Positions 7,474 through 62,796 of a stretch of 64,000 bases of DNA are shown here, in pieces. Source of the stretch: Dicyema japonicum (Eukaryota > Animalia > Dicyemida); the NCBI GenBank assembly GCA_011109175.1, contig RDEW01000035.1, positions 62,001 to 126,000 of the forward strand. The letters are read 5' to 3'. The notes under the pieces are model-generated. The model was given only the letters and a program-made list of their open reading frames with translations. It was not told where the DNA came from and did no database searches. Numbering within the stretch: the first letter of the stretch is position 1; every line of letters starts with the position of its first letter. The translations under genes and the position numbers were made by a program.

Positions 7474-10400
7474 ATTATAAGCACTTATCGCTATGTCATA
7501 GGACTTGACAAAGCATGTGCAACACGAGTTAGCAAATCACTGGTTAGTTTCATCCACTTCCTCCTATTCAAAGCCGCAGCGCGCAACCAGTCCAGATCCT
7601 CTCCACTTGCAAGATGCCGTCCCATTTCTTTGAGGTCCTCGTCGAGAACGATTGCCAGTGTCGTCCTTGGGCGACCACGGAAACGGGGGGCCTCCAACAT
7701 GAAGTAATCCTCCATGGCTACGTTCGCGGGGCATCTAGGTCCAGTCGCAGAATATGGCCGAAAAGCCTCCATCGTGTATCCAGAATCTCATTAGAAATTT
7801 CTGAGGTCTTCGTCCTCTTATAGAGAAGATTAGATGACATCCTCGTATCACTTCTTTCGAACATCATATGCCGTAGTTGGTCTCTATGAAACGCATTAAG
7901 CCTTTTCAGTTCATTTCTTGAGCAGGCCCAAATACCAGCGTTATATAGTAGTATGGGTTTCACTAGCGAGTTGTATAATCGAGTTTTTGTTATAATGTCA
8001 AGGCCCTTTTTGTGAAGTCAGATGTTCTTCAATCTGGAGAGGGCAGTTTGTGCTAGGGTTTTCCTTCTCGTAATTTCTTCATGGTCTCCTAGGAGGGAGC
8101 CAAGCTTTTTGCATTTGCGCCAGTACTCCTCCGTCCTTGTTTCTTCCCTCTTGAGTTCAGTTACGTCAGTCTTGTCCGGATTTACTGTTAGGAAACCATT
8201 CGGCTAGTCTTCCAGACACTTCTTCCATCAAGCGGGTGAGCGGTATTTTGTCATTTGAAGTAAAGTCTACGTCGTCAGCATACGCAATAATGTTTGTCTT
8301 TTCACCCATTATCGGTTTTGACTCCCGTAAAGCAGCTTCAAGGTATATGACAAAAAGTATAGGTGATAATGGGTCTCCCTGTGGAGTGCCAACAGTCGTC
8401 TCAAATCGGCGAGACAAGGCTCCCCCGACTCTTACAGTGAGCCAAGTATCAGCTAGGAGGGTGGTGGCCATTCTGACAGTTGAAGCGTCTAGGAAACTTT
8501 CCAAAACCAGTATTAGCCTCCGTCTGTCGACAGAGTCCCTCGAAATGTCGATTCCGAGGATGGTTGTAGACATTTTGAACTTTTGAACGGCCGCAGATCT
8601 CCACTTGTGGGACCACAAAACATCGGAAGTAGATCTTCCTTTTCGGAATCCGCTGTGGTATGGCGACAGAAAAGTATCTAGGCGTCCTTCCATCCTTTGT
8701 AATGTTATGTTCGCCAGAATTTTCCGAAGTGAATTCATTAATATGACCGGACGGAGGTTCTCCACCTTAGATCTTGGTTTATTCGCCTTCTGTACAGGTA
8801 TCAAGATACCCTCTCCCAGGGTCAGCGTGTGACCATAATAGTACATTTCATTCAGGATCCTAGCGATGCATTCATACAGCTTTTGGGTTCCATATTTGAA
8901 GAATTCACCAGCGAGTCCGTCGGGGCCAGGAGTCCTGTTGTTTTTCAACTTGGAACTCGCAAGTTCAACTTCATATGGTGTGATTTCCTCGTCCAATTTT
9001 CCTCGTTCTAGGTTGATAGTGTCGTTCCTTGGGTCAAAAAGTTTTCCAAAGTGGGCAGCGATAATTTCAGCCACTTCCATTTGGTCCACAATTTGCGTTC
9101 CTTTGTCATCTCTTATCATTATCGGTTGATGGGGTCTATTTCCTTTCATCTGTTTCACAGCCTCGTAAAATCTAGCGTTGTCCTTGAGAGATTCTATCTT
9201 CTTAATCTGGTCCAGTGCTTTATTTCTGTTATGCTGGCGTATAGTTTTTCTTATTTTTGCTTTGATAGTTTTTCTTTCTAGCCGCAATTTTGATTTTACG
9301 TTCGAATCGTCAGTATTTTGATATAGCATCCATATGGTCTTCTGTTTATTGGCAAGGTCCTTCACCGTGTAAATTTCATTGTGCGATGGGGTTTTCTCAT
9401 TTTCTTTCAATAGATGCAGATTGGCTCCTTTATGTATTGAGTGCTTTACAAAATCCCAGGATTTTCCGGGCGGCAAATCTTAGGCATGTTTTCTAGTTCT
9501 GCATCCAGATATTATTTGAATTCTAGGGCCCCTTCTGATTGACTGATTAAGGATTCCAGATTATAACGTCTATAGTTAGGTTCTGTGGTTTCAATGTGCT
9601 CCCGTTTCGTTCTTTGTAGTACCATAAATCTCTTTAGAGAAAGTCTAGCAATAACCATTTTGTGGTCGCTGTCGATAATCGATCCACCATAAGCTCGTGC
9701 ATCAAGTATAATTCCTCGGTCTTTTTGCCTGCATATGATATAGTCGATCTGGTTGTACATATTTATCACTCGCCCTTCGGGGTTTGTTCTGTGTCCCGAC
9801 CACGTAGATTTATGTCTGGCTGGATGCATGAAGGCTGTATCGCATAAAAATAGGTTGTTCGTTTGACAGAAGTTAGCTAGTAGAGTTCCCGGGAGATTTC
9901 TTTTCCCCCTACCATGCCTTCCCATGAATATCTCATCGGTCGTAACCTGGGTGCCAGCTTTCGCATTTAGGTCTCCTGCGATCATTACTAGTGTTGAGAG
10001 AGCATACATGGAGAAAACGGCAGAAAGACTGGTGTAAAAGTCATCAATCTCATCAGGGTTTTTATTAAGCCATCCACTGTGAGGGGCGTACACGTTTATT
10101 ATAGTTAGATATTTCTTCGACGGGTTGAGGTCATCCAGTTTCAATTGCAACACCCCGATTCTATCATTCACATTGTAACATCGGCAAACTCTCCTGGATA
10201 GATCTTTCCTGACCGCAAATCCTAGCCCATAGTGCTTGTTTCCACCTGGAAGGAAGATTAGTCGGAAGTTCCCATGTTGTTCTTCGATCCCGTTTATAAG
10301 TTTGGTCTCCTGAAGGCAGGCGATTGAAACCTTGTATTTTGAAAGATCCTCGACCAGTTCCTTCCGTTTCCAAACGCTAGAGAGTCCCCTGACGTTAAAC

Positions 10401-10533
10401 GTGAGAAGGGAGAAGTCCGATGGCTTGAAACTGTGTTTTCCAGACATTGAGATCAAGAGCCACGTCACCAGCTCAACCAAAAAAATGATGGGGTCTATTT
10501 CCTTTCATCTGTTTGGCGAGAAAGAAGTTAAAG
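7474..10533 (-). mobile_element. Full-length RTE-clade LINE, family RTE-1 copy a (APE + RT; nonsense and frameshift mutations)
   Basis: APE ORF 9512-10480 and RT ORF 8166-9476 (GTPQGDPLSP, YADD); (AAT)n tail; 14-bp TSD TAAAAGCACATATT at 7460-7473 and 10534-10547; splits the Ginger integrase. Confidence 0.95.
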
Positions 10534-12917: not shown

Positions 12918-14745
12918 GAAAACATTCTAAAGCACCTCGGTCCAAACGGGCTCTTGGCACTTAAAGATATCTTCGAATTCTCCATCAACAGGTGTTTCAT
13001 CCCGATGTTATGGAAGAAGTCGAACATTATCCCAATACTCAAGAACAACAAAGCCTCCTCCTTGCCCTCTTCGTTCAGGCCAATTTCCTTAACATCTGTT
13101 GTCTCAAAAATCCTCGAAAATCTTAACGAAATCACCCCCTACCTCGACCTCTCCGACTCACAACATGGTTTCCGTCTTTTACACTCGACCACCACGCACT
13201 TACTGACACTAACCCAATACATCTCCAACGGTTTCAACAACTGCAAACCCCCAGAACGAACTGTCTTGGCCTCTATTGACCTAACTAAAGCTTTCGACAG
13301 AATCTCCCGTGTGGTCCTCTGCAACAAGATCTATTCTTCAAATATTCCCTCTGTATGGAAGTCATGGCTCACAAATTTCCTCTCGGGAAGACTGGGTCAT
13401 ACGTGTCTATATTCAAATCTATCAAGATATCGACTCCTACCAAACGGTGTTCCCCAGGGATCAGTCCTTTCACCCTCACTTTTCAACCTTTACGTCAAAG
13501 ACATCCCAACAACCCAAAATACGTTACTATTGACATATGCCGATGATCTAGTAATCGCATCCAGGAGTGGCGATGTTCGACTGGCCACCGAAAAAGTGCA
13601 GTACCACCTGAACTTGCTATCCGACTGGATGAACTTAAACTGGATGAGTGTTTCCACCTCGAAGTCATCAGCTACCCTGTTCACAACCGATCGAAGACAA
13701 TTCAACCTAAACCCCACACTCTCGTTGGGAGACGAACCACTCCCCTTAAATAAATACCCGAAGATCCTTGGAGTTGTCTTCGATCCTTCACTCTGTTTCA
13801 ACAGACAAGTGGAGGAAGTAATGACAAAAGCCAAGCGGAAACTTAACATATTACGGGCAGTAGCTGGCCACTCAAACGGTCAGCAAAAAGAAAACTTAAC
13901 TCTTCTCTACAAACAGTTCATCAGGACTACACTCAACTACGCCTCACCAAGTTGGGCCCCCTCAATCTCCTTGGAATTATCTACAATCATACAGAAATTG
14001 TGAGCCGATGCCATGTCCTATGAGAAGAGCTGTTCAGGATTCTCGACCCCGCCGGACTCGTCCTCACCTTTGTCGGTCTGGGATCACTTAGTTAGATGAG
14101 AACTTTTATTTCTTTCTCTTTGACCCAGTGATCCTGGGGGTAATAATAATAATAAGAACTGCAGAAAGTGCAAAACTCGGCGCTGAGAATAATAACTGGC
14201 TGCTTAAAGTCAACCCCCACCGACCATTTACATTGGGAGTCGAAAATCCTCCCGCTCTATGACCACCTGGAAATGCGTAATTTACAATTTCTACGGCAGT
14301 CGTTCGACCCGAATCACCCAGTTCACGCTCTGCTAAGTAACAATAACCGCTGATACATACGCAGGACCCTCTTTGACCTACAAAGAGCCTTGTCGAAGAT
14401 CACCGCCCCTCAAGAAGACTCAACTTGGACCCGCCGAATCCATGATTTCATCTCAACACGGGCCATTAAGACACTTCAATATAACAAAGTCTTGGAGCGC
14501 TTCCCCCCTGATATCAGCCCAACGGAACAATCGCTCCCGAGGAAGATCAAAATCGGACTGGCTCGCCTACGATGTGGACACCACCCTTTTCTGGCTGGCA
14601 GAGTAGTTCGGGACCTTTTTCCCTGCCCTGGACCACCGGATGCAAAAGTCGAGGATCTCTGGGAGCGGCCTGTCCGGACTGCACGCTCTCTGATGGTCGC
14701 CGGCTTCCCACTTGCTGGCGAAGCCGGGGTTAATAATTTAATTTA
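12918..14745 (+). mobile_element. 5'-truncated L2/jockey-like LINE RT, interrupted near 14.0 kb
   Basis: ORF 12954-14003 (FRPISLTS, DLTKAFD, GVPQGSVLSP, YADD) resumes at LQKVQNSALRIITG; ends GGGGTTAATAAT. Confidence 0.88.
13968..14155 (+). mobile_element. Short 3' fragment of a GGATCAC-tail LINE inserted in the RT
   Basis: Similar to the reverse complement of 27260-27435; (TAA)n tail; no clear TSD. Confidence 0.75.
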
Positions 14746-27879: not shown

Positions 27880-29212
27880 AATTATCCAAAGTGGAACCCG
27901 CCGACATTATCGACGTTGCGTTACGATTGCAACAGAGATCAACTGGAGAAACCAAAAGACGTTCCCTCTTCTTACCGCCCCGTCTCAATAACTTGTGTTT
28001 TATCAAAAGTGCTGGAAAAGCTTATATTAATGTGCATCTCTCCTGTTCTACATCTATTAGAGTTTCTACATGGTTTCAGGGCAGACCGTTCTACAACGAC
28101 TCATTTGGGTTCTATCTCCCAGTTTATTACTGACGGCTTCAACACGAGAACACACCTACGGACGGCCTTTACGGACGGCCTTTGTATCCTTCGACATACA
28201 GAAGGCCTTTGATTCTGTTCCGAGGAAACTCCTAACGCATAAGATTTTTAATTTGAACTTACATCCGAACATCAAGCTATGGCTGGAAAATTTCTTAACT
28301 GGACGACGCGGAAGGGTCGGGATTGACAAAACCACTTCAAAATCAAGGCTACTCCCCAATGGGGCCCCGCAAGGCTCCCCTTTATCTCCTCTCCTTTTCA
28401 ACTTATTTCTACATGACCTATTTACTACCAATGACCAGGACACTATGTTTTTATCCTATTCGGACGACCTAATTATCGCTGCAGGAGATAAATCTCCTTC
28501 CGTGGCTGTAGCAACTGTTCAGACACACCTAAACCGAGTATGTGACTGGCTATCTGCAAATATGTTATGTGTATCAGCATCTAAATCACAGTTCACTATT
28601 TTCACTACTGATAGAAGATTTAAGGATGGACTCGAACTGTTTTTTGGAGATACTTCTATCCCTTCTACGCAAACCCAGAAGATCTTTGGGGTAGTTTTCG
28701 ACTCTCTGATGACGTTCTCGAGTAACATAGAGGGTCTTCGGAAATGGAACATTTTAAAAGCGATCATAAAGAAGAACCTTTTTCCCCTGCTGCTTGCGTC
28801 AACAAGGTCTACCAACATGCCATCGTTTCTACCATTGAATATGCCTTCTTTTTTCGAGAGTGGATCGTTTAAACTCTCTTAGGCGGAAAATTATGCACCA
28901 AACGGACATCCCTATTGGCGGCCTCGTTTCTGATGAGGCGATGTTGAAGAATGGCCAGGGTTTCTTACGTTTCTGCAAGGAACTGAAAAACCCATTCAAG
29001 GAAAAGGTGGTCCATGCAGAGGAATTTCGGTCGGTTATAAAAAAGTTCACGTCGATTGAATTCCTTTGCAGAAGGAAGAGAAGACGCTTCCGGAATGCGG
29101 TTGGGTCATCAAAAGACCAGACAAAGAGAGTTTGGATGTTGTTGGAGGCTGGGATCACCTAATTAGTTAGTTTTGACCTATCTTTCTTGGTGGTCTTGGA
29201 GTTAAATAAATA
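27880..29212 (+). mobile_element. 5'-truncated L2/jockey-like LINE
   Basis: YRPVSIT, DIQKAFD, GAPQGSPLSPLLF, YSDD; ORF ends AGIT* in the stem-loop tail; (TAAA)n. Confidence 0.85.
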
Positions 29213-31790: not shown

Positions 31791-34700
31791 AACATACACC
31801 CCACTTTATTTAACAAACAATAAAAAAGTTAATATATTTAATCAACAACCTTCCTCGCCTGCCTGTTCGCCAGCCTTTTCAGGCAGGTTCGATTCTGGTT
31901 GCTGAAACAACTCCGAGAGCGCTTTGTCTAATTGAACCCTCTGCCCATATGGCATCTCAGGGCTCTGCCTCCTATACCCCAGTGTCAAGCTCTCTAGGGT
32001 CCGATTTAACACAGTGGACTGTAGATAGGCCTGGAGCTTCCTATCTACCCCTAACTGCTTCAGATAACCCTTGTGGTACTTTGATGCAATTTTTCCCACA
32101 TTATAGGAATAATGAGGACTTTGCAACTAAGCATCTGCCCCATCTCGTTTGCAAGAAAATCATACTTCCTTTTTTTCTCCACCTCCACAGTCTGCAAACG
32201 GTCTTGAGACGTGATGCCAATTTCTAAGATAAGGACTTGGCCAGACTCCTTATCGTGTACCACAATGTCCGGTTTATAGTGCTTGACTAGCACCGAGGTA
32301 CGGATAACACTGTCTACCTTAATTTGGACCCTGGTGTTCTCTACTACAGATTGCACCTTATGAGTCCGCAACTTTCTGGTGTGGCGAATACCATACTTAT
32401 TGCATAGTAGAAGATGAAGACTCCTTACTACCTCGTTGCCTCCACACATAGTCGTGGCAGAGCATGGATCCACATCGAGTGGCTAAATGATCAACCGACA
32501 TGCTCCTTGACTTACAGTGGGGACATGTATTTGTTGATCGACCCCAAAAAATATTGCGGTCTTGCATATACGTGTACAACGCCTCCGATCGAGGTGAGTT
32601 GTCACCGTATTTTAGCCATATTGTCGACGACTTAAGGTCGACATGTGGGTTGTCCAATGCTCTGAAGAGGACCTTATGAAGGCTTTTTAAGTTGATCTTT
32701 TCCATCAAATTATTATATTGTAATTCGATCAACGCCCTCACATTTACTAGCCCACCATCATCAACACCATACTTAGCAGACAAAAAAGGTCTGATAGTGC
32801 CTAGGTGGGTTGCCCGTGTTTTCTCGGTCGTTATTATGGCGTGCTTCCTAGCAGACACACTTGACCCAGCTATCAGGGTGTCGTGCATTCGCATTAGGAT
32901 ACGCTCACTTAGTTGGACTACTCCACACAGTCCACGGCCGAATTTATCACGGGGTAAATATAGTCTCTCCTTATTGGCTGCCAGCACATGGACATGGTTC
33001 TCTCTGAGTACTCCACGGATCATAACATCCATCTCATCATACTCTTTGGGCTCAAACTCCACAACACCTATGTAGTAGTTTAGCAGCGAGACAGCATACT
33101 CATTTAATGCTAGGAACAAATTCCTTGCATTTAGAGACGTCTTACACAATAACGCTGCTCTTTTACGGATGCCTTCAGTAATTTGTCGCTTTGTCTCAGG
33201 CATTATAAGGGACTTTGGAGATTCGGTAACACCCAGATACTTATATCCTTCGTGTTCCTCTAGGACTCTTACTAACTCGCTACATACTTGCGTGTTAGTC
33301 GCAGACTTTGAATAATTCAAATCTAGCCCTATACTCTCAAAGAATTCCCTGGCACAGACCCCCATGGAGTAGAGCTCCTCGGCTGTTCGAGCATACATCT
33401 TCAAGTCATCGATAAAAAGAAGGTGATTTGTACTGAAACAGACCCCTTCACAATGAACTGGTATTTGCTCAAACCGGTCATTGAGGCGGCGACTCAATGG
33501 CTCCAAACAGAGAACAAAGAGTAGCGGAGACATGCTATCCCCTGAAGGATCCCCCTCTTGAGTTTTACCTCGCCTATCCGGTGCCTATTATAGTTCAGAT
33601 GAATACTCCACCTATTCATCACAGCCACTACAAAGCTGATGAACCACACAGGCATACACAGACTGTGTAGGCACTCGACAAGGTAAGAATGATCAACTGA
33701 ATCGTAAGCCTTCTTCACATCCACCCACATAGACAAAAGTGAGTTTCCGTGAGACACAGAAAGGCATTTGTTGATCAAAGCCTGCTCTTTTGCCCCCTGA
33801 CAATTTCGCAAGTTCCCAACTGATTCTCGGAGAGAATCCCATTTGCGTCTACAAAGCTCCTGACCTCATTAGCCACCAATTTGGTCATCAGCTTATACAG
33901 GGTTGGCATGCAGGTTATCGGTCGATAATCTGCAGCAGACTGGGGGTTGTCCAGCTTTGGGATCAAATAAGTTGTCCCTGTGCATGCCCAATCAGGAATC
34001 GTTTCCGGGTTAGTGATGCTTTTCTGTAATACACGACACATAGACTCGTGTAATGAAGTGCATCTTTTGATAAAGAAATTATAAACTTTATCGACCCCGG
34101 TCGTCTTCCAATCAGGGAGATGTCTCACTACCGCCTCAAATTTCTTGCGAAAATCGAAAATTCCGCAAGATTCCGCCAAGAAAGGAGCGGCGCTGTACGG
34201 GACATTCCACGCATTTCCTCTGCGTGGTTTAGCCTCCCACATACTACCCCATGTGGAAAGCATTTGTCGCGTCCTGCTGGGAACATACACTATGGCCATT
34301 TTCGTGTAGGCGACGGTAAAACAATCTGCGATTAAACTCAAACAGAGTATTTTCTCTCCTTCTCTTACACCGACTTTCATGTGTATAGAGTTTCCTCTTA
34401 TACACCATTATTGCCTTTTCTAACTCCACCTTTGCCCTCCTCAACTCTTTGAGGTCCCATTTGGGAACACGGAGTTTACTAATTAGCCCCTTTACTATAG
34501 GCGGTGCTTTTCCTCTAACCCCTCTCGCCACACTACTTATGTGCCCCTCCAGTGCTTCCAGCTCAGTCTATCTCCAAGCAATCTTGGCACAGATCTGCTC
34601 CCTCCATTTACTGGGTGGTCTGGGCTTGTCCGTCAATTCCTCATAGGTGATCTGTGCTGCATACAGCACTAGGGAGATGTCACCCAGTGACCCTACTGGC

Positions 34701-35249
34701 TTAGCCTCCACCGCATAAGCCACAGCCTTATTGATACAGGTTAACACTACACCGTTAACCTTACAATGAGGAATCTTGCGGGTAAATCTACGGTCCTCAA
34801 GTGGGACATCTGCCGCTGCAGCGAGATTCCGCGCAAAGACCTCATAAACATGCTTGAGCTGCAACGTATCACAGCTCTGGTGCTCGTGCTCTCTTTGACA
34901 GTTGTGGTCACCTGGTCCCCGCCCCTTTAGACCAGTACCCTCTTTGCCTACAGCCATCTTCTTGAGTTCACTCACAGATATAGCAGTACTGAATCTGCCA
35001 CTGCAGAGCTCCGCCAAGTATGGCCATCCATTCCAGGGCATTCGAGATAGCCTGCTACGTACCTGCAGGACTACCTGCCTCGCCCATTCTTTTGGGTCAT
35101 CTGCCACAACGCTCTCGGATATGGCAAGAATTACATTCATACCATCAGGTAACGCAAGTGACCCTTCTCCTTTTTTCCTTTCAACATTTTTGCCAACTCG
35201 AGAGAGTTTTAACGCCACCGAATCGAACGCACGTTGCATGTTTTTATAT
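31791..35249 (-). mobile_element. R4/Dong-clade RLE-type non-LTR retrotransposon, near full length, frameshifted
   Basis: YAAQITYEE, YRPITCMPTLYK, DVKKAYDSVDH, LLFIDDLK, CPHC..HL..C and KPDIVVHD..LEIGI..EKKRKY. Imperfect AT-rich TSD ATAATATATAT (31780-90, 35260-70). Confidence 0.9.
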
Positions 35250-48239: not shown

Positions 48240-50530
48240 AATATCATTATTATTATTAAAAGCACTTTCACAGAATCAAATAACGTTATATTAACTAAGG
48301 CCCCGTTTGTGCCACACGTTTCTAAATTTGCTTCATTTCACGATGCTTATTGGCCTTGATTGTGCCACAGAGCAAAATTTCTTATTTGAAATCTTTTTGG
48401 GCCAACCTAGGCCCATTAAATTGCGAAATTGTTTTCGATGAAATATATCCATTTTCTTGAGCTCTAGCTTTGTGACCCCCCATATACCCGAGTTGTACAT
48501 CAGCACCGGCTTATATATGAGTTTTATAGTCTTAATCTTAGGTTTGTTTTATTAGTTTTCGTTGAGTCCATAACTTCTGCATTTTCTTGTGCATGGGAGT
48601 GGCTAGAACTCTTCTATCATCATGTCCTCACTATCACCAAGTAAGGATCCCAATTTCCTTTTTTTCCTCCAATTTTCATCAATTTATTTTGATTTCCTGG
48701 TGATTCCTAGGTTTTCAGTCTTTTCATGATTAACTCGCAGAGACCAATTCTTAAATTCTCCAGGGAATTTCTCAAAAGCAAGTCCAAATTCCAGATCATT
48801 TTCTGACACAAAATCTATGTCATCTGCATATATAATTTTCATCGGCATGCATCCTTAACATTTTGTTCTAAGAACTCTCAATGCCGCTTCCAGGTTGTCT
48901 TGATTTTTGGTAGAACCGGAGATGGACAGTCTCCCTGAGGTATTCCAACTGTTGTCCCGAAAGGCTTTGATGTTGTGTTCCCAACTCGTACAGTTAATTC
49001 AGTGTTCGATAATATGAAACGGACAAGTCTTGTGTTATCCCCATCAAGAAAACTCCCAGCAACGTCCAACAATGTTTTTTGTTGACAGTGTTAAACGCAC
49101 TGGAAATGTCCACTCCCAAAATCTTAAAATCACTCCTGTATCGTTGACACATGTCACATATCCACCTGTGGGACCAGACAGCATCTGCGGTCGAGCGTCC
49201 CTTTCTGAACCCACTCTGTCCCGGCGACAAAAATTCATAAACATCAGAAGATATCCGACTAAGGGTTATCAGAGATAGTATCTTCCTCAATGTTCCCAGT
49301 AATATCACAGGTCTTAGATTTTTTATCGGTCCCTTGCTCTTTTCTGGTTTATGCAGAGGAATCAAAATTCCATCACCAAGTTTCAAGGGGGAATGCGTCT
49401 CAAATACCTTATTGAAAATCTTTGTAATGAGGGTTGTCAGTTCGCCTGGTGCATACTTGATCATTTCTCCATGTATGTTGTCTGGTCCCACTGCCCTGTT
49501 GTTGTTTAATTTAATGATTGCCAGGTTAGTTTCCTTTGTAGATATAGGTAGATTCAGGCTTCTTGGTGATTTCTCAAATGGCTCCACATATGAGGTTTCA
49601 TTTTCATTCAAAAGTCCTGAAAAATGTTCGGCAATAATCTCAGTTTTTTCTTTATTATCCAATACATTTCTTCCTTGACTGTCGTGAATACAAATATTCG
49701 TAGGTTGAACTCCCCTCTGCAAAAGACGAACTACTCGAAACATTTGTGTTCCGTATCTCAACTTCTCAATTTCACTGACACGTTCGTCAATTTTTTTGAC
49801 ATAAATTAACTTCTTCCTACTTCTAATCTCCTTGACAAATACGATTTCTTTCTCTTCTTAACTCGTTGTAGATATCATTATTTGTACATGATTCCATTGT
49901 CAGCCGCAATTTTTTTTGTTTAATTGATAATGATCCAATTTCGTGATCGAAGACCCCTTTAAATCCTGGCGGCCTTTTTTCCCCAAGCACGCATGCATCC
50001 TTCATATTTTGTTCTAAGAGCTCTCAATGTCGCTTCTAGGTATACGACGAATAGAACCGGAGATAGAGTCTCCCTGAGGTATTCCAACTGTTATCCCGAA
50101 AGGCTTCGATGTTGTGTTCCCAACTCGTACAGTCAATTCAATGTTAGAATAGAAAACGGACAAGTCTAGTGTTATCCTCATCAACGAAACTCTCAGCAAC
50201 GTCCAAAAATGTTTTTCTGTTGACAGTGTCAATCGCACTGGACATGTCCACTCCCAAAATCTCAAAATCACTCCTGTATTGTTGACACATGCCACATATC
50301 CACCTGTGGGACCAAACAGCATCTGCGGTCGAGTGTCCCCTTCTGAACCTACTCTGTTTCGGCAACAAATAATTCGTAGACATCAGAAGATATCCGACTA
50401 AGGGTTATCAGAAATAGTATCTTCCTCAATATTTTCTGTAATATCACTGGTCTTAGATTTTTTATCGATCCCTTGCTCTTTCATGGTTTATGCAGAGGAA
50501 TCAAAATTCCATTACTTAGTTTCAATAATG
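48240..50530 (-). mobile_element. Degenerate RTE LINE with a duplicated RT segment
   Basis: LNNNRAVGPDNI, QSGFRKGRSTAD and GIPQGD; 48845-49400 is repeated at 49990-50520; tail AAAGTGCTTT(TAA)n. Confidence 0.85.
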
Positions 50531-51916
50531 GCATTCCTACATTTTCGAAGACACTTAGAAGGTCAAAATCCCATCCAGGAAATCTATTTTTACATAATTC
50601 AATAGCAAGAATTAAATCCTCCATAGATATCGTTCCACATAAAGTCCCTTCCATAAGTGAGGATGGTCACCTTCAAGAACACCAATTTTTATGCCTTTGG
50701 GAATAATTAACAAAAAATCCAATTCTTGTTCCTCTGTCAGTTGTTGTCTTAAGGCATCTTCCACTTTTTCTTTCGGGATCCGAGAACCGTCATGAGATTT
50801 AGATTTATCTCTTCATTTTTTATTCAAAGAATTCATTTTCGAAAAAATTTTCCAAATTTTAGGATTATTACGATAGAGTTTGCAACATTCTCTCTTCCAT
50901 CTCTCTTCTTCAATACGTTTTAATACTTTTATCAATACCTTCTTTATCGACTTTATCCTCTCTTTAAGACAGTAAGAATCTTGCGGATCCCATATCGTCT
51001 TGGCTTACCTTCAAAAATCCGCTTTTCATTAAGCAGAGATTATATTTGCAATCTTAAGACTTTCAAGGTTTTATTTGTAATATTATGCAAGACTTTCAAG
51101 GTTTTTATTTGTAATATTTTTTTGGTGAGGTGGTGACGTGCCTCGTTTCTTCTGTGTACAACGGTTAAGAAAAATGTCCGAAAAACACTCATTACACAAT
51201 CGAGAACTCAGGCTAATGACGTTCAACGTACGTGGAATATCGAAAGATTAGACAAGGAAAGTACTTTGTGACGATCTCGAGAAATACAAAATATCTATTG
51301 GCTGCCTACAAGATACGAAAATCGAAAATGGACGCGATGAGACATGGAACAACTACCGACTGATTCTTTTCCCAACTGAATGCAAGCACTACGGCATGGG
51401 ATTTTCCCTACACGTGAATTACCTCAAAAATTACATCGCTATTTGAGAGTCAACGATCGAATATGTGTCCTACAAGTCAAACTAAAAGAACTATGCCCGT
51501 CCAAGAGTCTATTAACTGTCATAAATGTCTATGCACCACACTGTGGACGAGTAATCAAGAACCCCAGTGAGCTCGAGGAATATTACTCAGAACTATCAAG
51601 CACATACTCTAATAATGCTTCCTTGTCTTTGTTGCGAGAGATATGAATGCAAAGGCCGGAATGCGAATGGGGCCCGAAGAATCCTCTATTGCAGCGGTTC
51701 TCAACCTGGGGTCGATTCGACCTCCAGGGGTCTAAAATCAATCCAGATCGATCGTAAGGGGGTCGAAAATAAAATACTTGGGAGTCGAAAATAAATTTAA
51801 TATATTTAATTTTTTCATTTTAAATTAAGTTAGTTTTTGGCACTTGGATTTATAAAAAATTCTTTTGATGATAGACCATATTGCTTACTGCATAACAAGT
51901 CATTATCAAATGATGC

Positions 51917-54900
51917 TTTTGGTTGAGCTGGTGACGTGGCTCTTGATCTCAATGTCTGGAAAACACAGTTTCAAGCCATTGGACTTCTCCCTTCTCACGT
52001 TTAACGTCAGGGGACTCTCTAGCGTTTGGAAACGGAAGGAACTGGTCGAGGATCTTTCAAAATACAAGGTTTCAATCGCCTGCCTTCAGGAGACCAAACT
52101 TATAAACGGGATCGAAGAACAACACGGGAACTTCCGACTAATCTTCCTTCCAGGTGGAAACAAACACTATGGGCTAGGATTTGCAGTCAGGAAAGATCTA
52201 TCCAAGAGAGTCTGCCAATATTACAATGTGAATGATAGAATCGGGGTGTTGCAATTGAAACTGGATGACCTCAACCCGTCGAAGAAATATCTAACTATAA
52301 TAAACGTGTACGCCCCTCACAGTGGATGGCTTAATAAAAACCCTGATGAGATTGATGACTTTTACACCAGTCTTTCTGCCGTTTTCTCCATGTATGCTCT
52401 CTCAACACTAGTAATGATCGCAGGAGACCTAAATGCGAAAGCTGGCACCCAGGTTACGACCGATGAGACATTCATGGGAAGGCATGGTAGGGGGAAAAGA
52501 AATCTCCCGGGAACTCTACTAGCTAACTTCTGTCAAACGAACAACCTATTTTTATGCAATACAGCCTTCATGCATCCAGCCAGACATAAATCTACGTGGT
52601 CGGGACACAGAACAAACCCCGAAGGGCGAGTGATAAATATGTACAACCAGATCGACTATATCATATGCAGGCAAAAAGATCGAGGAATTATACTTGATGC
52701 ACGAGCTTATGGTGGATCGATTATCGACAGCGACCACAAAATGGTTATTGCTAGACTTTCTCTAAAAAGATTTATGGTACTACAAAGAACGAAACGGAAG
52801 CACATTGAAACCACAGAACCAACTATAGACGTTATAATTGGAATCCTTAATCAGTCAATCAGAAGGGGCCCTAGAATTCAAAGAATATCTGGATGCAGAA
52901 CTAGAAAACATGCCTACAGATTTGCCGCCCGGAAAATCCTGGGATTTTGTAAAGCACTCAATACATAAAGGAGCCAATCTGCATCTATTGAAAGAAAATG
53001 AGAAAACCCATCGCACAATGAAATTTACACGGTGAAGGACCTTGCCAATAAACAGAAGACCATATGGATGCTATATCAAAATACTGACGATTCGAACGTA
53101 AAATCAAAATTGCGGCTAGAAAGAAAAACTATCAAAGCAAAAATAAGAAAAACTATACGCCAGCATAACAGAAATAAAGCACTGGACCAGATTAAGAAGA
53201 TAGAATCTCTCAAGGACAACGCTAGATTTTACGAGGCTGTGAAACAGATGAAAGGAAATAGACCCCATCAACCGATAATGATAAGAGATGACAAAGGAAC
53301 GCAAATTGTGGACCAAATGGAAGTGGCTGAAATTATCGCTGCCCACTTTGGAAAACTTTTTGACCCAAGGAACGACACTATCAACCTAGAACGAGGAAAA
53401 TTGGACGAGGAAATCACACCATATGAAGTTGAACTTGCGAGTTCCAAGTTGAAAAACAACAGGACTCCTGGCCCCGACGGACTCGCTGGTGAATTCTTCA
53501 AATATGGAACCCAAAAGCTGTATGAATGCATCGCTAGGATCCTGAATGAAATGTACTATTATGGTCACACGCTGACCCTGGGAGAGGGTATCTTGATACC
53601 TGTACAGAAGGCGAATAAACCAAGATCTAAGGTGGAGAACCTCCGTCCGGTCATATTAATGAATTCACTTCGGAAAATTCTGGCGAACATAACATTACAA
53701 AGGATGGAAGGACGCCTAGATACTTTTCTGTCGCCATACCACAGCGGATTCCGAAAAGGAAGATCTACTTCCGATGTTTTGTGGTCCCACAAGTGGAGAT
53801 CTGCGGCCGTTCAAAAGTTCAAAATGTCTACAACCATCCTCGGAATCGACATTTCGAGGGCCTTCGACTCTGTCGACAGACGGAGGCTAATACTGGTTTT
53901 GGAAAGTTTCCTAGACGCTTCCACTGTCAGAATGGCCACCACCCTCCTAGCTGATACTTGGCTCACTGTAAGAGTCGGGGGAGCCTTGTCTCGCCGATTT
54001 GAGACGACTGTTGGCACTCCACAGGGAGACCCATTATCACCTATACTTTTTGTCATATACCTTGAAGCTGCTTTACGGGAGTCAAAACCGATAATGGGTG
54101 AAAAGACAAACATTATTGCGTATGCTGACGACGTAGACTTTACTTCAAATGACAAAATACCGCTCACCCGCTTGATGGAAGAAGTGTCTGGAAGACTAGC
54201 CGAATGGTTCCTAACAGTAAATCCGCACAAGACTGAGATAACTGAAATCAAGAGGGAAGAGACAAGGATGGAGGAGCACTGGCGCAAGTGCAAAAAGCTT
54301 AGATCCCTCCTAGTAGACCATGAAGACATTACAAGAAGGAAAACTCTAGCACAAACTGCCTTCTCCAAACTAAAGTAAATCTGTTCCACAAAAAGGGCCT
54401 TGACATTATAACAAAAGCTCGATTATACAACTCGCTAGTGAAACCCATACTATATAACGCTGGTACCTGGGCCTGCTCAAGAAATGAACTGAAAGGCTTA
54501 ATGCGTTTCATAGAGACCAACTACGGCATATGATGTTCGAAAGAAGTGATACGAGGATGTCATCTAATCTTCTTCTATAAGAGGACGAAGACCTCAGAAA
54601 TTTCTAATAAGATTCTGGATACACGATGGAGGCTTTTCGGCCATATTCTGCGACTGGACCTAGATGCCCCCGCGAACGTAGCCATGGAGGATTACTTCAT
54701 GTTGGAGGCCCCCGTTTCCGTGGTCGCCCAGGGACGACACTGGCAGTCGTTCTCGACGAGGACCTCAAAGAAATGGGACGGCATCTTGGAAGTGGAGAGG
54801 ATCTGGACTGGTTGCGCGCTGCGGCTTTGAATAGGAGGAAGTGGATGAAACTAACCAGTGATTTGCTAACTCGTGTTGCACATGCTTTGTCAAGTCCTAT

Positions 54901-58700: not shown

Positions 58701-59661
58701 GCTAAATGAAGAAAGATGGCTAAGGGCCAAAGGACTTGGAATTGACATCAGATGCAGGCTCTACAACGCGTTTGTGAAACCAATTCTACAGTACAACCCT
58801 GGGACATAGGGAAGTTTCTTCAACGAACTATTGAACTTGGATTCGTTCCATAGAAGGCAACTAAGAAGCTTACTCGGAATGGAGTGGCCACGTAGAATAT
58901 CAACCACTGGTATCTACAACAAGTGTGTGTGTTCTTACATCAGCAAGGATGTGATAGATGCCCGGTGGAAGCTATTTGGGCATGTATTAAGAATGAACCC
59001 GGACGCACCCGCTAACAAAACAATGTAAGATTACTTTGACAGTTGCGAAAAACCCTTTTGCGGACGAACTAGATCGACACTTCCGGCTGCCTTAAACAAA
59101 GACTTAAATCGTGTGAGAAAAAATCTAAAGACGGGGGACGACCTGGACGAATTGAGATCACTCGCATTCGACAGAGGAAGATGGAAAAGACTAACTATAA
59201 ATATTGTTTCCTTGAGTGTTGCACATGCGGGGCTATAATCATTATGGCTTTCGTGAAAGTGCCTTAATAATAATAATTAAGCAATACTGATATGCTTCCA
59301 TTAGTGTTATTTACGAAGATTTAGAATCGCACGCGACATTTCCAGAATGGAAAAACAATTAACTTAAAATTTCTGATAAGTTGACGTTAAAATCCAAACC
59401 CTAACCCTATTGTGGCCGGCCCAAAGTTCATGTATACACATTCCAGTTAAAAAAATAATCATTTAAATCTTATATGATTCAAAATCAAAAAATAGATTTT
59501 TCTGGTGATTAAAAATTGGTTGTGAGATGTGCTAACTTAAGAATTTTCCGCCACATTATGGAACAGGAGGAAGAGATGACATGCGGCAATAAATCTACCA
59601 CATCTAATTTAGTAATCACGAATCTTAATTTTTGATAAAAAAATATTTATAAATCAAAATG

Positions 59662-62159
59662 TTACAAGAGGTCCATACTTCTTTCAATTTTATATATTTG
59701 TTGGTTAATATATTTCAATTGCTGGTAATTAACGGGAATTTGTCTATATGATTAATTTTTGATTAACCAGAGTCTGTAATTGAGTACAATTTATATATTT
59801 ATTGTAATATTCATTTAGTAAAGTGTGAATACAGTCAATATGCGTGTGAACATAATTAAGAATAATGTTAGGATCAATATCAGGTAATCTAATAAAACAA
59901 GGAGCTAATATAGTGGATAGACTAAAACAATTCATTTTGTTAACATGTCCATAAGCAACAACTTTAACTAGATGCCACATAAAAATATTGAATATTCTGA
60001 GATGATGAGGTTGAGTTTTTGATAATAAAAGTTTGATGGAATTAATAGAATTAGTAATTTGATAGTAAACGTGAGGACCAAAGAGAGGCTGTGTCATATC
60101 ACGAAATAGAGCCTTTATTAGAGTGGCCAGCGTTAGAGGAGAATAATCACTAAAGTCATTCCAATTATTATTTTTTATTTTATTTTTTAATGTTGTCAAA
60201 TCAGTAAGTGATCCTGGTTTTCTATATATTCCAACCTCATATAGACCACAAGAGGACTCTATTAACTCAATTAATGTAGATAATAGTTGTTCAAACATAG
60301 AATTTAATAATATTTTATCACATTTTTTATGAATAATTATTTTACATTCTATAAAATATATTAAATAATAACCTTTACAAAACAAACTTTTATCAAACAA
60401 TTTAATTGTTGATGAACATAAATTACATAATGTGGGCATATTTAAATTTTGGGTAATATATTTATGATCACAAATTATCCCTTTCCGAATTAGTACTCGT
60501 TTATTACTTTGTTTTAATTTATTCTCACTCTAATTTATTAAATAATATTACTTTATCTTCATTTTTTATTAACTCTATTTGACATTCTTTTAAACTATTT
60601 ATTATTGTATTGACACATTTCTAGTATTATCAATCAATTTACATTATATTCTCCTATTTTCTTATAGTTTGATTTGAAAATAACACCACCAACTGAACGA
60701 AAGTCCTTATTTAATATAAACACAGCTTTAAAGAAATAAGAAAGGATTCTCCATCTCCTCTTTCCTGGGTTATCAAGTGCTTGTCTCAAATGTACTAGTT
60801 TGGTTTGTCTTAGAAATGCAATAATGGAGGATTTCTATAATAACAACAAGACTAACAAAGTGACATTTACTACATATATGTTGGTTAGACAAATAGTGCA
60901 ACTCATCACTAACCTCCAATAATCCAATATAATGAGAATTTCCTGGTTTGTTTATTATTGGGAGAATCATGTAGTCTATTACTACCTTGTAGAGAGTACA
61001 AGAAAGGTCGTAACAAGAAGATTTAATAATAAATTGATAGAAAGTGTGTTGATCAATCATGAGTAATGTACTAGCCTCGAGGAATCTAATATTATTAATA
61101 TGGAGAATAGCATCAAATATATTAATAATTTCATATTGTAAAGATTTGGTGATCCCATACAGGTCATACTATGTAATACTTTCTCATTTAATATATTATT
61201 ATATTCTAATAAATATTGGTTAATACACACGCTTAATGTTATTATAACATTACCCATTCACAATATTATCTTTGTAATATATTCTCGTATATTTTATACT
61301 TGTTTTACAAATTCCCTATTTATTATTATAATATTACTTCCATTATTATTCTACTATTATACAATATTGATTCTATTTCATTCATTGCACTCTTCTCCTT
61401 CAATTCTTTTAGTATATTTTCTACAATATTTCCATTATCCCCCATTATTACTACCGATTGACTACGATTCTCTCTTAACATTCTCTCGTATAACATTCTT
61501 CCCATCCCTTCATATGTATTACTCACTATTCCACTTTCGTATCTATTACACAACCACTCAATTAAGGACTTTTCGTCACATTCTTTCAACTTGGGTGTCC
61601 TTTTTTTACTCATTCTTGAAGTTAAGTCATCTTTGTTACATAAGTCTTGGTTAATTATCCCTTCTTTACTCATCATGGAGGTTATGTTGTTCATTGTACG
61701 CAGGTCTTGGTTAGGTGTCCTATCTTTACTCATTTTTGAAGTTATGTCGCCTATATTACGCAGGTCTTGGTTAAGTGTATCTACTTTAGTCATTTTTGAG
61801 GTTATGTTGGGACTAGCCACGTCTCCCTTACATATTTCACTCATTGAGGGAGTTTGATTGAGTAAATAAAAAGTACATCCAGTCACATTGTTTAGTGATC
61901 CCATCTCAAGAAGGTTTGCCACATGTGACCATGTTTTATAGTATTGATATGGTTTTTCAGTGAGTGATAATACACGTTCACTGGATATTCTTCCATTATT
62001 GAAACATACTTCAACCAATCTGAAATTCTTTAATGATTCTGTAATTTTACAAAGCTTAGTAATGTTAATAATAACATCATAACAGTCATCATTTGAGAAT
62101 ACTTTCACCTTTATTGTTCTCCCTGGTAATTGCACTGATATTACTTCATAAGATCCCAT
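59662..62159 (-). CDS. MYO9: Myosin-IX-like protein: RA domain, shrunken motor remnant, C1, RhoGAP; 3' end approximate
   Basis: N-terminal RA-like domain (FRLVEV..ERVLSLTEKP); motor remnants DEKSLIEWLCNRY, SQSVVIMGDNG and INQYLLE; C1 CNLC..FCK..CKIIIHKKC; RhoGAP GLYEVGIYRKPGS..LAPCFIR. Confidence 0.72.
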
Positions 62160-62265
62160 TACTGATTCAATTTATTATTTTATTTTATTTTTTTAAATCC
62201 TTTTTGAATTTTAATATTATTATTATTAAATATCTTTTAATCCAACGACTAGAAAGTCGAAAGGA

Positions 62266-62796
62266 GTTGGATACTCTCCTGACATTCGGCCAACATGTCA
62301 ATGACGTTATTACCAAAGTCAGGAAGAGGACCAACATATTGAAAATTTTGTCCCGATCACCAATCGGGCACAACACCTTCTTACTACAGAAAATTTACAG
62401 ACAATACATACTGCCAGTAATCGAATATGCATGTCCCTCCTGGAGCTCGATGATTTCTAAATCGTCGTCTCAAAAATTAGAAGCCGCACAACTTGCTGCC
62501 TTGAAAATAATAAATAAGAAAACTGTGGATAACGTATTGAATGTTAAGAACACCTAAGATAGAGAGTGAAGTCATTTCTACAGTGGGCAATAAAAACCGG
62601 CTGTCCGCTTTCACTCTCTATATCTGACTATCTAGAAAATGCGGGAAATCTATGGAGAATGAGACCGTCCTCGTTTCTACCAATTCTGTTGGATCTTCGA
62701 GGACCCCGAACGAGAGCCTGAACATGGAAAACCGGGATCACTTAGTTAGTAGTTAACTTTTAACTTTTCTAATCCGGTGATCTTGGGGTAAAAAAA
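62266..62796 (+). mobile_element. 5'-truncated L2/jockey-like LINE
   Basis: 13-bp TSD AAAGTCGAAAGGA (62253-65, 62797-809); VIEYACPSW; ends TGIT* plus stem-loop and polyA. Confidence 0.88.

Follow-up and report, generated by a model that had tools for sequence, protein, structure and literature searches.

A 64,000-nucleotide (nt) stretch of the genome of the dicyemid Dicyema japonicum (assembly GCA_011109175.1, contig RDEW01000035.1, positions 62,001 to 126,000 of the forward strand; hereafter the window, with positions counted from its first letter) carries on its minus strand a gene of about 2.5 kb (59662-62159) that encodes, in order, a Ras-association (RA)-like domain, a remnant of a myosin head, a C1 domain and a RhoGAP domain. 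We consider it probable, at roughly two chances in three, that the gene is genuine, present in one copy and derived from a class IX myosin (Myo9), that its head was cut by several internal deletions, and that its product is a motor-less RhoGAP. An earlier note on this DNA had placed a miniature gene of the order RA-(motor)-C1-RhoGAP at these coordinates and had read it as a RhoGAP scaffold derived from Myo9; the features do lie on the minus strand in that order and within that span, and the interpretation is largely supported by the architecture, by a collinear head signal and by the loss of the motor motifs.

Class IX myosins occur in metazoans and filastereans and are described as having an RA domain at the N-terminus, then IQ motifs, and then C1_1 and RhoGAP domains (PMC3942036); the RA, head remnant, C1 and RhoGAP parts of the present gene stand in that same order. 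The predicted gene model has six exons and five GT-AG introns and encodes about 760 amino acids (aa) after three read-supported corrections of small insertions and deletions (indels). Similarity searches were all made with individual exons; the joined model served only for frame, length and landmarks.

The myosin-head remnant

To judge by sequence similarity, the middle region of the protein is derived from a myosin head, of which only a remnant persists. The comparison used a local myosin profile of 132 sequences, seeded with A+T-rich giant-virus myosins and containing no class IX heads; the giant-virus genes were fetched with a degenerate DNA pattern for EAFGNAKT, and one of them was used to collect 120 diverse myosins. 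The strongest signal comes from exon 3, which after read correction scores 16.4 bits against this profile in hmmsearch (E 3.4e-7 at Z=4, that is, four targets). None of 2,000 residue shuffles reached this score, the best shuffle attaining 11.7, and the reversed exon gave no match. Even uncorrected, the exon 3 open reading frame (ORF) is the best among the window's 688 stop-to-stop ORFs, no other exceeding 4.3 bits. Profile-profile alignment with hhalign agrees, with a probability of 91% and P 9.5e-7 over 121 columns. The earlier note had allowed that the middle region might hold no myosin-fold signal, which would have spoken for a different origin; such a signal is found.

Exon 3 carries a series of myosin motifs, each in its expected order. 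YLLE lies at the start of the exon; the alignment then runs through AILHINNI.F (for ILHLGNI.F) and LLMID (for LLG.D), continues through LY..VIDYMI..IN in helix O (for LY..LF.WLV..IN) and IGLLEVSDEL in the switch II strand (for FIGVLDIFGFE), and ends at CISKTNQ, for CINYTNE. The opening YLLE segment (I..YLLE) was also scored separately: its sub-profile score was reached by 9 of 3,000 shuffles (p ~0.003).

A weaker match lies in the C-terminal part of exon 1, with an hhalign P of 0.0013 over 86 columns and an hmmsearch score of 3.6 bits, which 13 of 2,000 shuffles reached. This alignment opens on 'L..L..RY', an N-terminal myosin motif; the ILVAVNPF block is passed over, and the match resumes at the P-loop strand, where the profile reads NQSILVSGESGAGKT and the gene RSQSVVIMGDNGNI; in the helix that follows, IL.SNPILE is represented by ILYNSRIIME. 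Both this segment and the YLLE segment are collinear with the main match in exon 3, and exon 2 sits at the position of 'FGNAKT ... GKFI.I.F'. Taken together, the remnant comprises about 220-250 residues, or about 220 aligned columns out of a head of about 640, roughly a third, and it corresponds to portions of the N-terminal region and of the upper 50K that surround the central sheet. A protein-language-model look-up of a 126-aa piece returned the Myosin_head cluster first (score 0.82), a weak lead.

Three candidate matches were set aside. An apparent 'GKFI.I.F' match in exon 2 is nonsignificant, its score being reached by 1,675 of 3,000 shuffles. The string EKVLHSM, read by eye as the ERNYHIFY motif, is placed by the profile in the 'ef..l..Af..lGfs' segment instead. 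Weak PDB matches to nucleoside-diphosphate kinases (E 0.1-0.5) were taken as chance.

The giant-virus sequences yielded an observation of their own. The EAFGNAKT pattern matched 16 giant-virus contigs in IMG/VR (L001-L016), and in 14 of them there are ORFs, some 1,000-1,100 aa long, that contain the motifs of switch I and switch II. The canonical P-loop GE[ST]G[AS]GK[TS] occurs in 10 of these 14, and the P-loop departs from that pattern in L002, L005, L011 and L015.

Loss of the motor

What remains of the motor within this remnant? The altered P-loop described in the earlier note is confirmed: VVIMGDNGNIVE lies at 61449-61414, and the myosin profile aligns it to the P-loop site. The same note had failed to find switch I, switch II or IQ motifs, and our scans of the three frames of the gene strand likewise returned no P-loop (G-x4-GK[ST]), switch I or switch II pattern and no genuine IQ motif, the only IQ pattern match being a spurious one inside the RA domain. 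Switch I (N.NSSRFG) is missing from the alignment, where it would be expected at the place of exon 2. Nor does removal of the predicted micro-introns restore a P-loop, as spliced transcripts might have been thought to do. Judged by the features of a working class IX ATPase site (P-loop GESGxGKT, switch I NxNSSRFG, switch II DIxGFE), the gene lacks all three, and it also lacks the class IX lower 50K region with its loop 2 insert, the relay, SH1 and the converter. Between CISKTNQ and the C1 domain there are only about 60 unrelated residues; the lower 50K region, loop 2, the relay, the SH1 helix, the converter and the IQ neck are therefore all gone.

The requirements of the myosin ATPase and of the actin interface are well established, and against them the consequences can be predicted. 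The stub should be unable to bind or hydrolyse ATP, because the Walker A lysine and threonine, switch I and the switch II glycine are gone, and it should be unable to grip actin or swing a lever, because the lower 50K region, loop 2, relay, SH1, converter and IQ motifs are gone. The predicted loss of actin binding thus follows from which parts of the head are absent.

The N-terminal and C-terminal domains

The RA assignment is borderline. Pfam RA (PF00788) matches residues 1-105 with E 6e-4 and 20.8 bits, just short of the cut-off (21 bits), and the entire exon 1 with E 0.0045; RA_2 also matches the N-terminus (E 0.0027). A single-sequence AlphaFold2 model of the region was unusable (predicted local distance difference test, pLDDT, 45), and a PDB search with the RA sequence gave chance matches only. 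Between the RA-like domain and the head remnant lies a tandem repeat (period 60, 72% matches, score 214 in Tandem Repeats Finder), the units of which encode 20-aa repeats resembling ITSKMSK..TPNQDLR; no similarity of these repeats to anything was found.

The RhoGAP domain is intact in sequence. It matches PF00620 at E 4.8e-21 and 75.6 bits, above the cut-off of 24.5, and the match spans profile positions 4-147 of 148. The arginine finger is the R of GIYRKPG, encoded by the codon AGA at 60221-60223, and the catalytic-face lysine and arginine of 'IKALFRDM' are retained, from which we predict that the protein has GAP activity on a Rho-family GTPase. A protein-language-model look-up gave RhoGAP clusters a score of 0.95. 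When the GAP core was compared with the PDB without its C1 part, the best match was the RhoGAP domain of human MYO9B (41.6 bits), ahead of ARHGAP15 (39.5), and the match to N-chimaerin was weaker (26 bits). A word-indexed search with the GAP exon, whose length filter excluded full-length Myo9, found nothing at E <= 1e-5 or E <= 10.

The C1 domain is divided by an intron. Exon 5 matches profile positions 1-31 of C1_1 at E 0.0024, and reading C1_1 through the intron gives E 7e-4, below the Pfam cut-off. Removal of the 24-nt intron (60372-60349) produces a regular C1 pattern, H-x12-C-x2-C-x12-C-x2-C-x4-H-x2-C.

Gene model and read support

The model is the minimum-intron path, obtained by a shortest-path search over GT-AG introns compatible with an open frame; its parts are listed with the other features in Table 1. 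On the minus strand, three long ORFs are visible before any splicing: 61326-62159 (277 aa), 60773-61060 (95 aa) and 59744-60439 (231 aa). Exons 1, 3 and 5+6 contain no internal stop, in DNA with a G+C content of 26-33%, and none of 5,000 base shuffles was as open; for exon 4 the corresponding p is about 0.05, and a single intron of about 300 nt that bypasses exon 4 also preserves the frame. The splicing of the five introns and the expression of the gene are predictions from sequence. Dicyemid introns are short, with a median of 27 nt (PMC6543705; short introns also in PMC13644364), and predicted lengths of 22-31 nt are consistent with this (PMC6543705, PMC13644364). In the D. japonicum genome as a whole, coding sequences average only 1,155 bp and repeats make up 49% (PMC6736024); the same paper lists BioProject PRJNA496385 and a transcriptome assembly, GHAB00000000, for the species.

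Table 1. Features of the gene and of the window (positions within the window)
Feature	Position	Strand	Description and basis
Exon 1	61338-62159	minus	274 codons; RA-like domain, tandem repeats and head remnant part 1
RA (Ras-association, ubiquitin-like) domain	61926-62114	minus	residues ~16-78, at the very N-terminus
Tandem repeat	61595-61807	minus	3.5 copies of a 60-nt unit; Tandem Repeats Finder
Head remnant part 1	61338-61595	minus	C-terminal part of exon 1; hhalign
P-loop relic	61425-61442	minus	GDNGNI (for GESGAGKT); hhalign; Walker A Lys-Thr deleted
Intron 1	61316-61337	minus	22 nt, GTAATA..AAATAG; minimum-intron path
Exon 2	61254-61315	minus	~21 codons; required for frame continuity
Intron 2	61232-61253	minus	22 nt in the window; the +T behind 61247 makes it 23 nt in the reads
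Exon 3	60796-61231	minus	145 codons after +C correction; head remnant part 2
Switch II relic	60899-60916	minus	EVSDEL (for DI.GFE); hhalign and pattern scan; glycine lost
Intron 3	60765-60795	minus	31 nt, GTACAT..ACCCAG
Exon 4	60643-60764	minus	~41 codons; predicted linker of no recognisable similarity; least certain exon
Intron 4	60524-60642	minus	~119 nt, GTAAAT..AGTGAG; predicted boundaries
Exon 5	60373-60523	minus	linker and first half of C1 (H-x12-C-x2-C-x12-C)
Intron 5	60349-60372	minus	24 nt, in frame, within C1
Exon 6	59662-60348	minus	second half of C1, RhoGAP, C-terminal tail
RhoGAP domain	59882-60283	minus	PF00620; Pfam
LINE ORF pieces	8166-10480, 12954-14003, 28070-28882, 32397-33533, 48994-49761, 51865-54378		Exo_endo_phos/RVT_1

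The window was compared with the DNA contigs of four public runs (2019, one study, one sample). Three indels set the contigs of all four runs apart from the window: +AG (behind 59747), +C (behind 61153) and +T (behind 61247). Each has full depth in the contig across it. In the window the first two disrupt the frame, and the third (+T) is intronic. The +AG correction abolishes the stop at 59744 and moves the stop to 59664-59662, the start coordinate that the earlier note had given; the +C correction lengthens GGG to GGGG (gene strand) and merges two frames into one exon of 145 codons. With the indels corrected, the reading frame is continuous. Within the coding model the window and the reads differ in six places, three synonymous and three nonsynonymous, which are too few to judge selection. 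A single contig covers 59451-62162 unbroken, and therefore no motor exons are concealed by an assembly collapse; read depth over the gene is that of a single-copy sequence. The assembly seems to carry unpolished indel errors of a kind prone to yield false pseudogenes elsewhere.

Descent and alternative explanations

Descent from class IX, assigned here on domain architecture, the profile containing no class IX heads, is likely, and the PDB ranking of the GAP core is the sole independent hint in the same direction. Several results weigh against it or against the reading of the gene as a whole. The lead of MYO9B is only about 2 bits, and when part of the C1 is included ARHGAP15 moves ahead by 1.4 bits. 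Neither exon 2 nor exon 4 gave a significant match to the myosin profile, and exon 4 gave none with hhalign either; Pfam Myosin_head matches no single exon at E <= 10; phmmer searches of the PDB with exon 1, with its C-terminal part and with the 126-aa piece returned no myosin; and exon 1 had no phmmer match at E <= 0.001 in a set of 1.84 billion representative proteins. RA and C1 both fall under the Pfam curated cut-offs, and only seven of the eight C1 zinc ligands are in register, the final cysteine being absent. The earlier note's view that the arginine finger and the C1 cysteines are kept is therefore mostly right, the last C1 cysteine being the exception.

Could the gene be a decaying pseudogene, a dead Myo9 copy caught in the middle of losing its motor, neither expressed nor functional? 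Its setting is compatible with this, for it is embedded in LINE-rich DNA (long interspersed nuclear elements) with a high-copy repeat about 100 nt upstream of the ATG; the window sequence has two frame breaks and a premature stop, and RA and C1 are sub-threshold. The frame breaks, however, are absent from the contigs of all four runs, and the corrected gene has about 760 open codons, with an openness of the large exons that the shuffles never matched. The introns retain GT-AG ends and phase, and RhoGAP is complete, the catalytic Arg, Lys and Arg included. So extensive a loss of the head implies that any decay would be old, yet the frame is intact, as in a gene in use and unlike a neutral relic. 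We therefore regard a pseudogene as unlikely, while ranking it first among the alternatives.

A second explanation invokes fusion or exon shuffling, in which a head fragment from a myosin of another class landed in an RA/C1-RhoGAP gene that does not descend from Myo9. The composition of the profile and the marginal affinity of the GAP domain to MYO9B leave room for it, but the remnant lies exactly between an N-terminal RA domain and a C1-RhoGAP tail, the class IX arrangement (PMC3942036), and under a fusion this order would have to arise by chance. We hold this scenario to be quite improbable. To our knowledge, no non-myosin RhoGAP family combines RA, C1 and GAP. Least credible of all is an ordinary non-myosin RhoGAP whose middle resembles a myosin head by chance or composition: single-exon Pfam and PDB searches did find no myosin and the profile was seeded with A+T-rich sequences, but composition-preserving shuffles never reach the exon 3 score, none of the remaining 687 ORFs in this A+T-rich window exceeds 4.3 bits, the hhalign P-value is very low, and the motifs matched, in three separate segments and in their proper order, are the most conserved ones of myosin.

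Predicted function and relation to known proteins

If the gene is indeed a trimmed Myo9, its head would have been reduced by several internal deletions, with everything past switch II removed, and the protein would switch off a Rho-family GTPase through the ordinary arginine-finger mechanism. Because the nucleotide site and the actin-binding and lever parts are missing, its placement would have to come from the RA and C1 modules or from partners, with no walking on actin, and the head stub would act only as a linker or scaffold. It is also conceivable, though we put this forward only tentatively, that the gene is the sole Myo9 orthologue remaining in dicyemids, animals of about 30 cells, and encodes a permanently motor-less RhoGAP in which the stub (central-sheet strands and helix O) has been kept for a new, non-motor job, for example keeping RA and C1-GAP in a regulated arrangement.

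Compared with class IX myosins such as Myo9a, Myo9b and C. elegans HUM-7, the protein is alike in its RA-like start, its head-derived middle and its C1-RhoGAP with an arginine finger. Class IX myosins normally measure about 1,900 aa or more; at about 760 aa, with the head cut to about a third and the ATPase motifs and IQ gone, the protein described here is far shorter, and it differs further in the missing last C1 cysteine and in a lineage-specific 20-aa tandem repeat after RA. The nearest precedents for a myosin without a motor lie outside class IX. Myosin-18 (class XVIII) lacks ATPase motor activity (PMC7900500, PMC3122231), and a headless isoform of Myo10 shows that a myosin tail can function without a working motor (PMC6345916). 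Like the present protein, myosin-18 derives from a myosin and is no longer an ATP-driven motor. Myosin-18 nonetheless keeps a complete head fold and binds actin, whereas here most of the head fold has been deleted. Headless Myo10 comes from an alternative transcript, and its gene encodes the full motor as well; in the present case the loss is fixed at the gene level and part of the head persists as a stub. Neither precedent, then, deletes most of the head in the gene itself.

A different kind of likeness is to chimaerins and RacGAP1, which share with this protein a C1 domain directly before RhoGAP, likely a functional resemblance. These proteins carry SH2 or coiled-coil N-termini and have neither an RA domain nor a myosin-derived segment, and here no Pfam match to an SH2 domain or to an N-terminal coiled coil of the chimaerin/RacGAP1 type was found in any exon. 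The protein is probably a Myo9 by descent and a motor-less C1-RhoGAP in its functional resemblance.

The class IX motor is thought to be needed to carry RhoGAP to actin-rich sites. A gene that retains RA, C1 and RhoGAP but has discarded two thirds of the head would, if our reading holds, reveal which parts of Myo9 are dispensable, would add a gene-level 'headless' myosin to the few inactive myosins known, and would offer a concrete case of gene shrinkage in an extremely reduced parasite. There is a practical lesson as well: small assembly indels break real genes, and introns of 22-24 nt conceal domains such as C1 from standard searches.

Surrounding sequence

The DNA around the gene is A+T-rich (28-38% G+C). 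An exact look-up of the exon 1 ORF found none on record. The remaining long ORFs of the window are mostly pieces of LINE endonuclease (Exo_endo_phos) and reverse transcriptase (RVT_1), and two minus-strand ORFs, 33775-34380 and 34568-35239, had no match in a Pfam search. High-copy repeats stand on both sides of the gene, which leaves hardly any unique promoter DNA: read depth increases about 100-fold at 62264-62700, beginning some 100 nt upstream of the start codon, and on the other flank (59414-59527) about 8-fold. Just downstream of the gene, the contigs of three runs have about 38 different letters between 59398 and 59395, which suggests a small structural difference or a misassembly.

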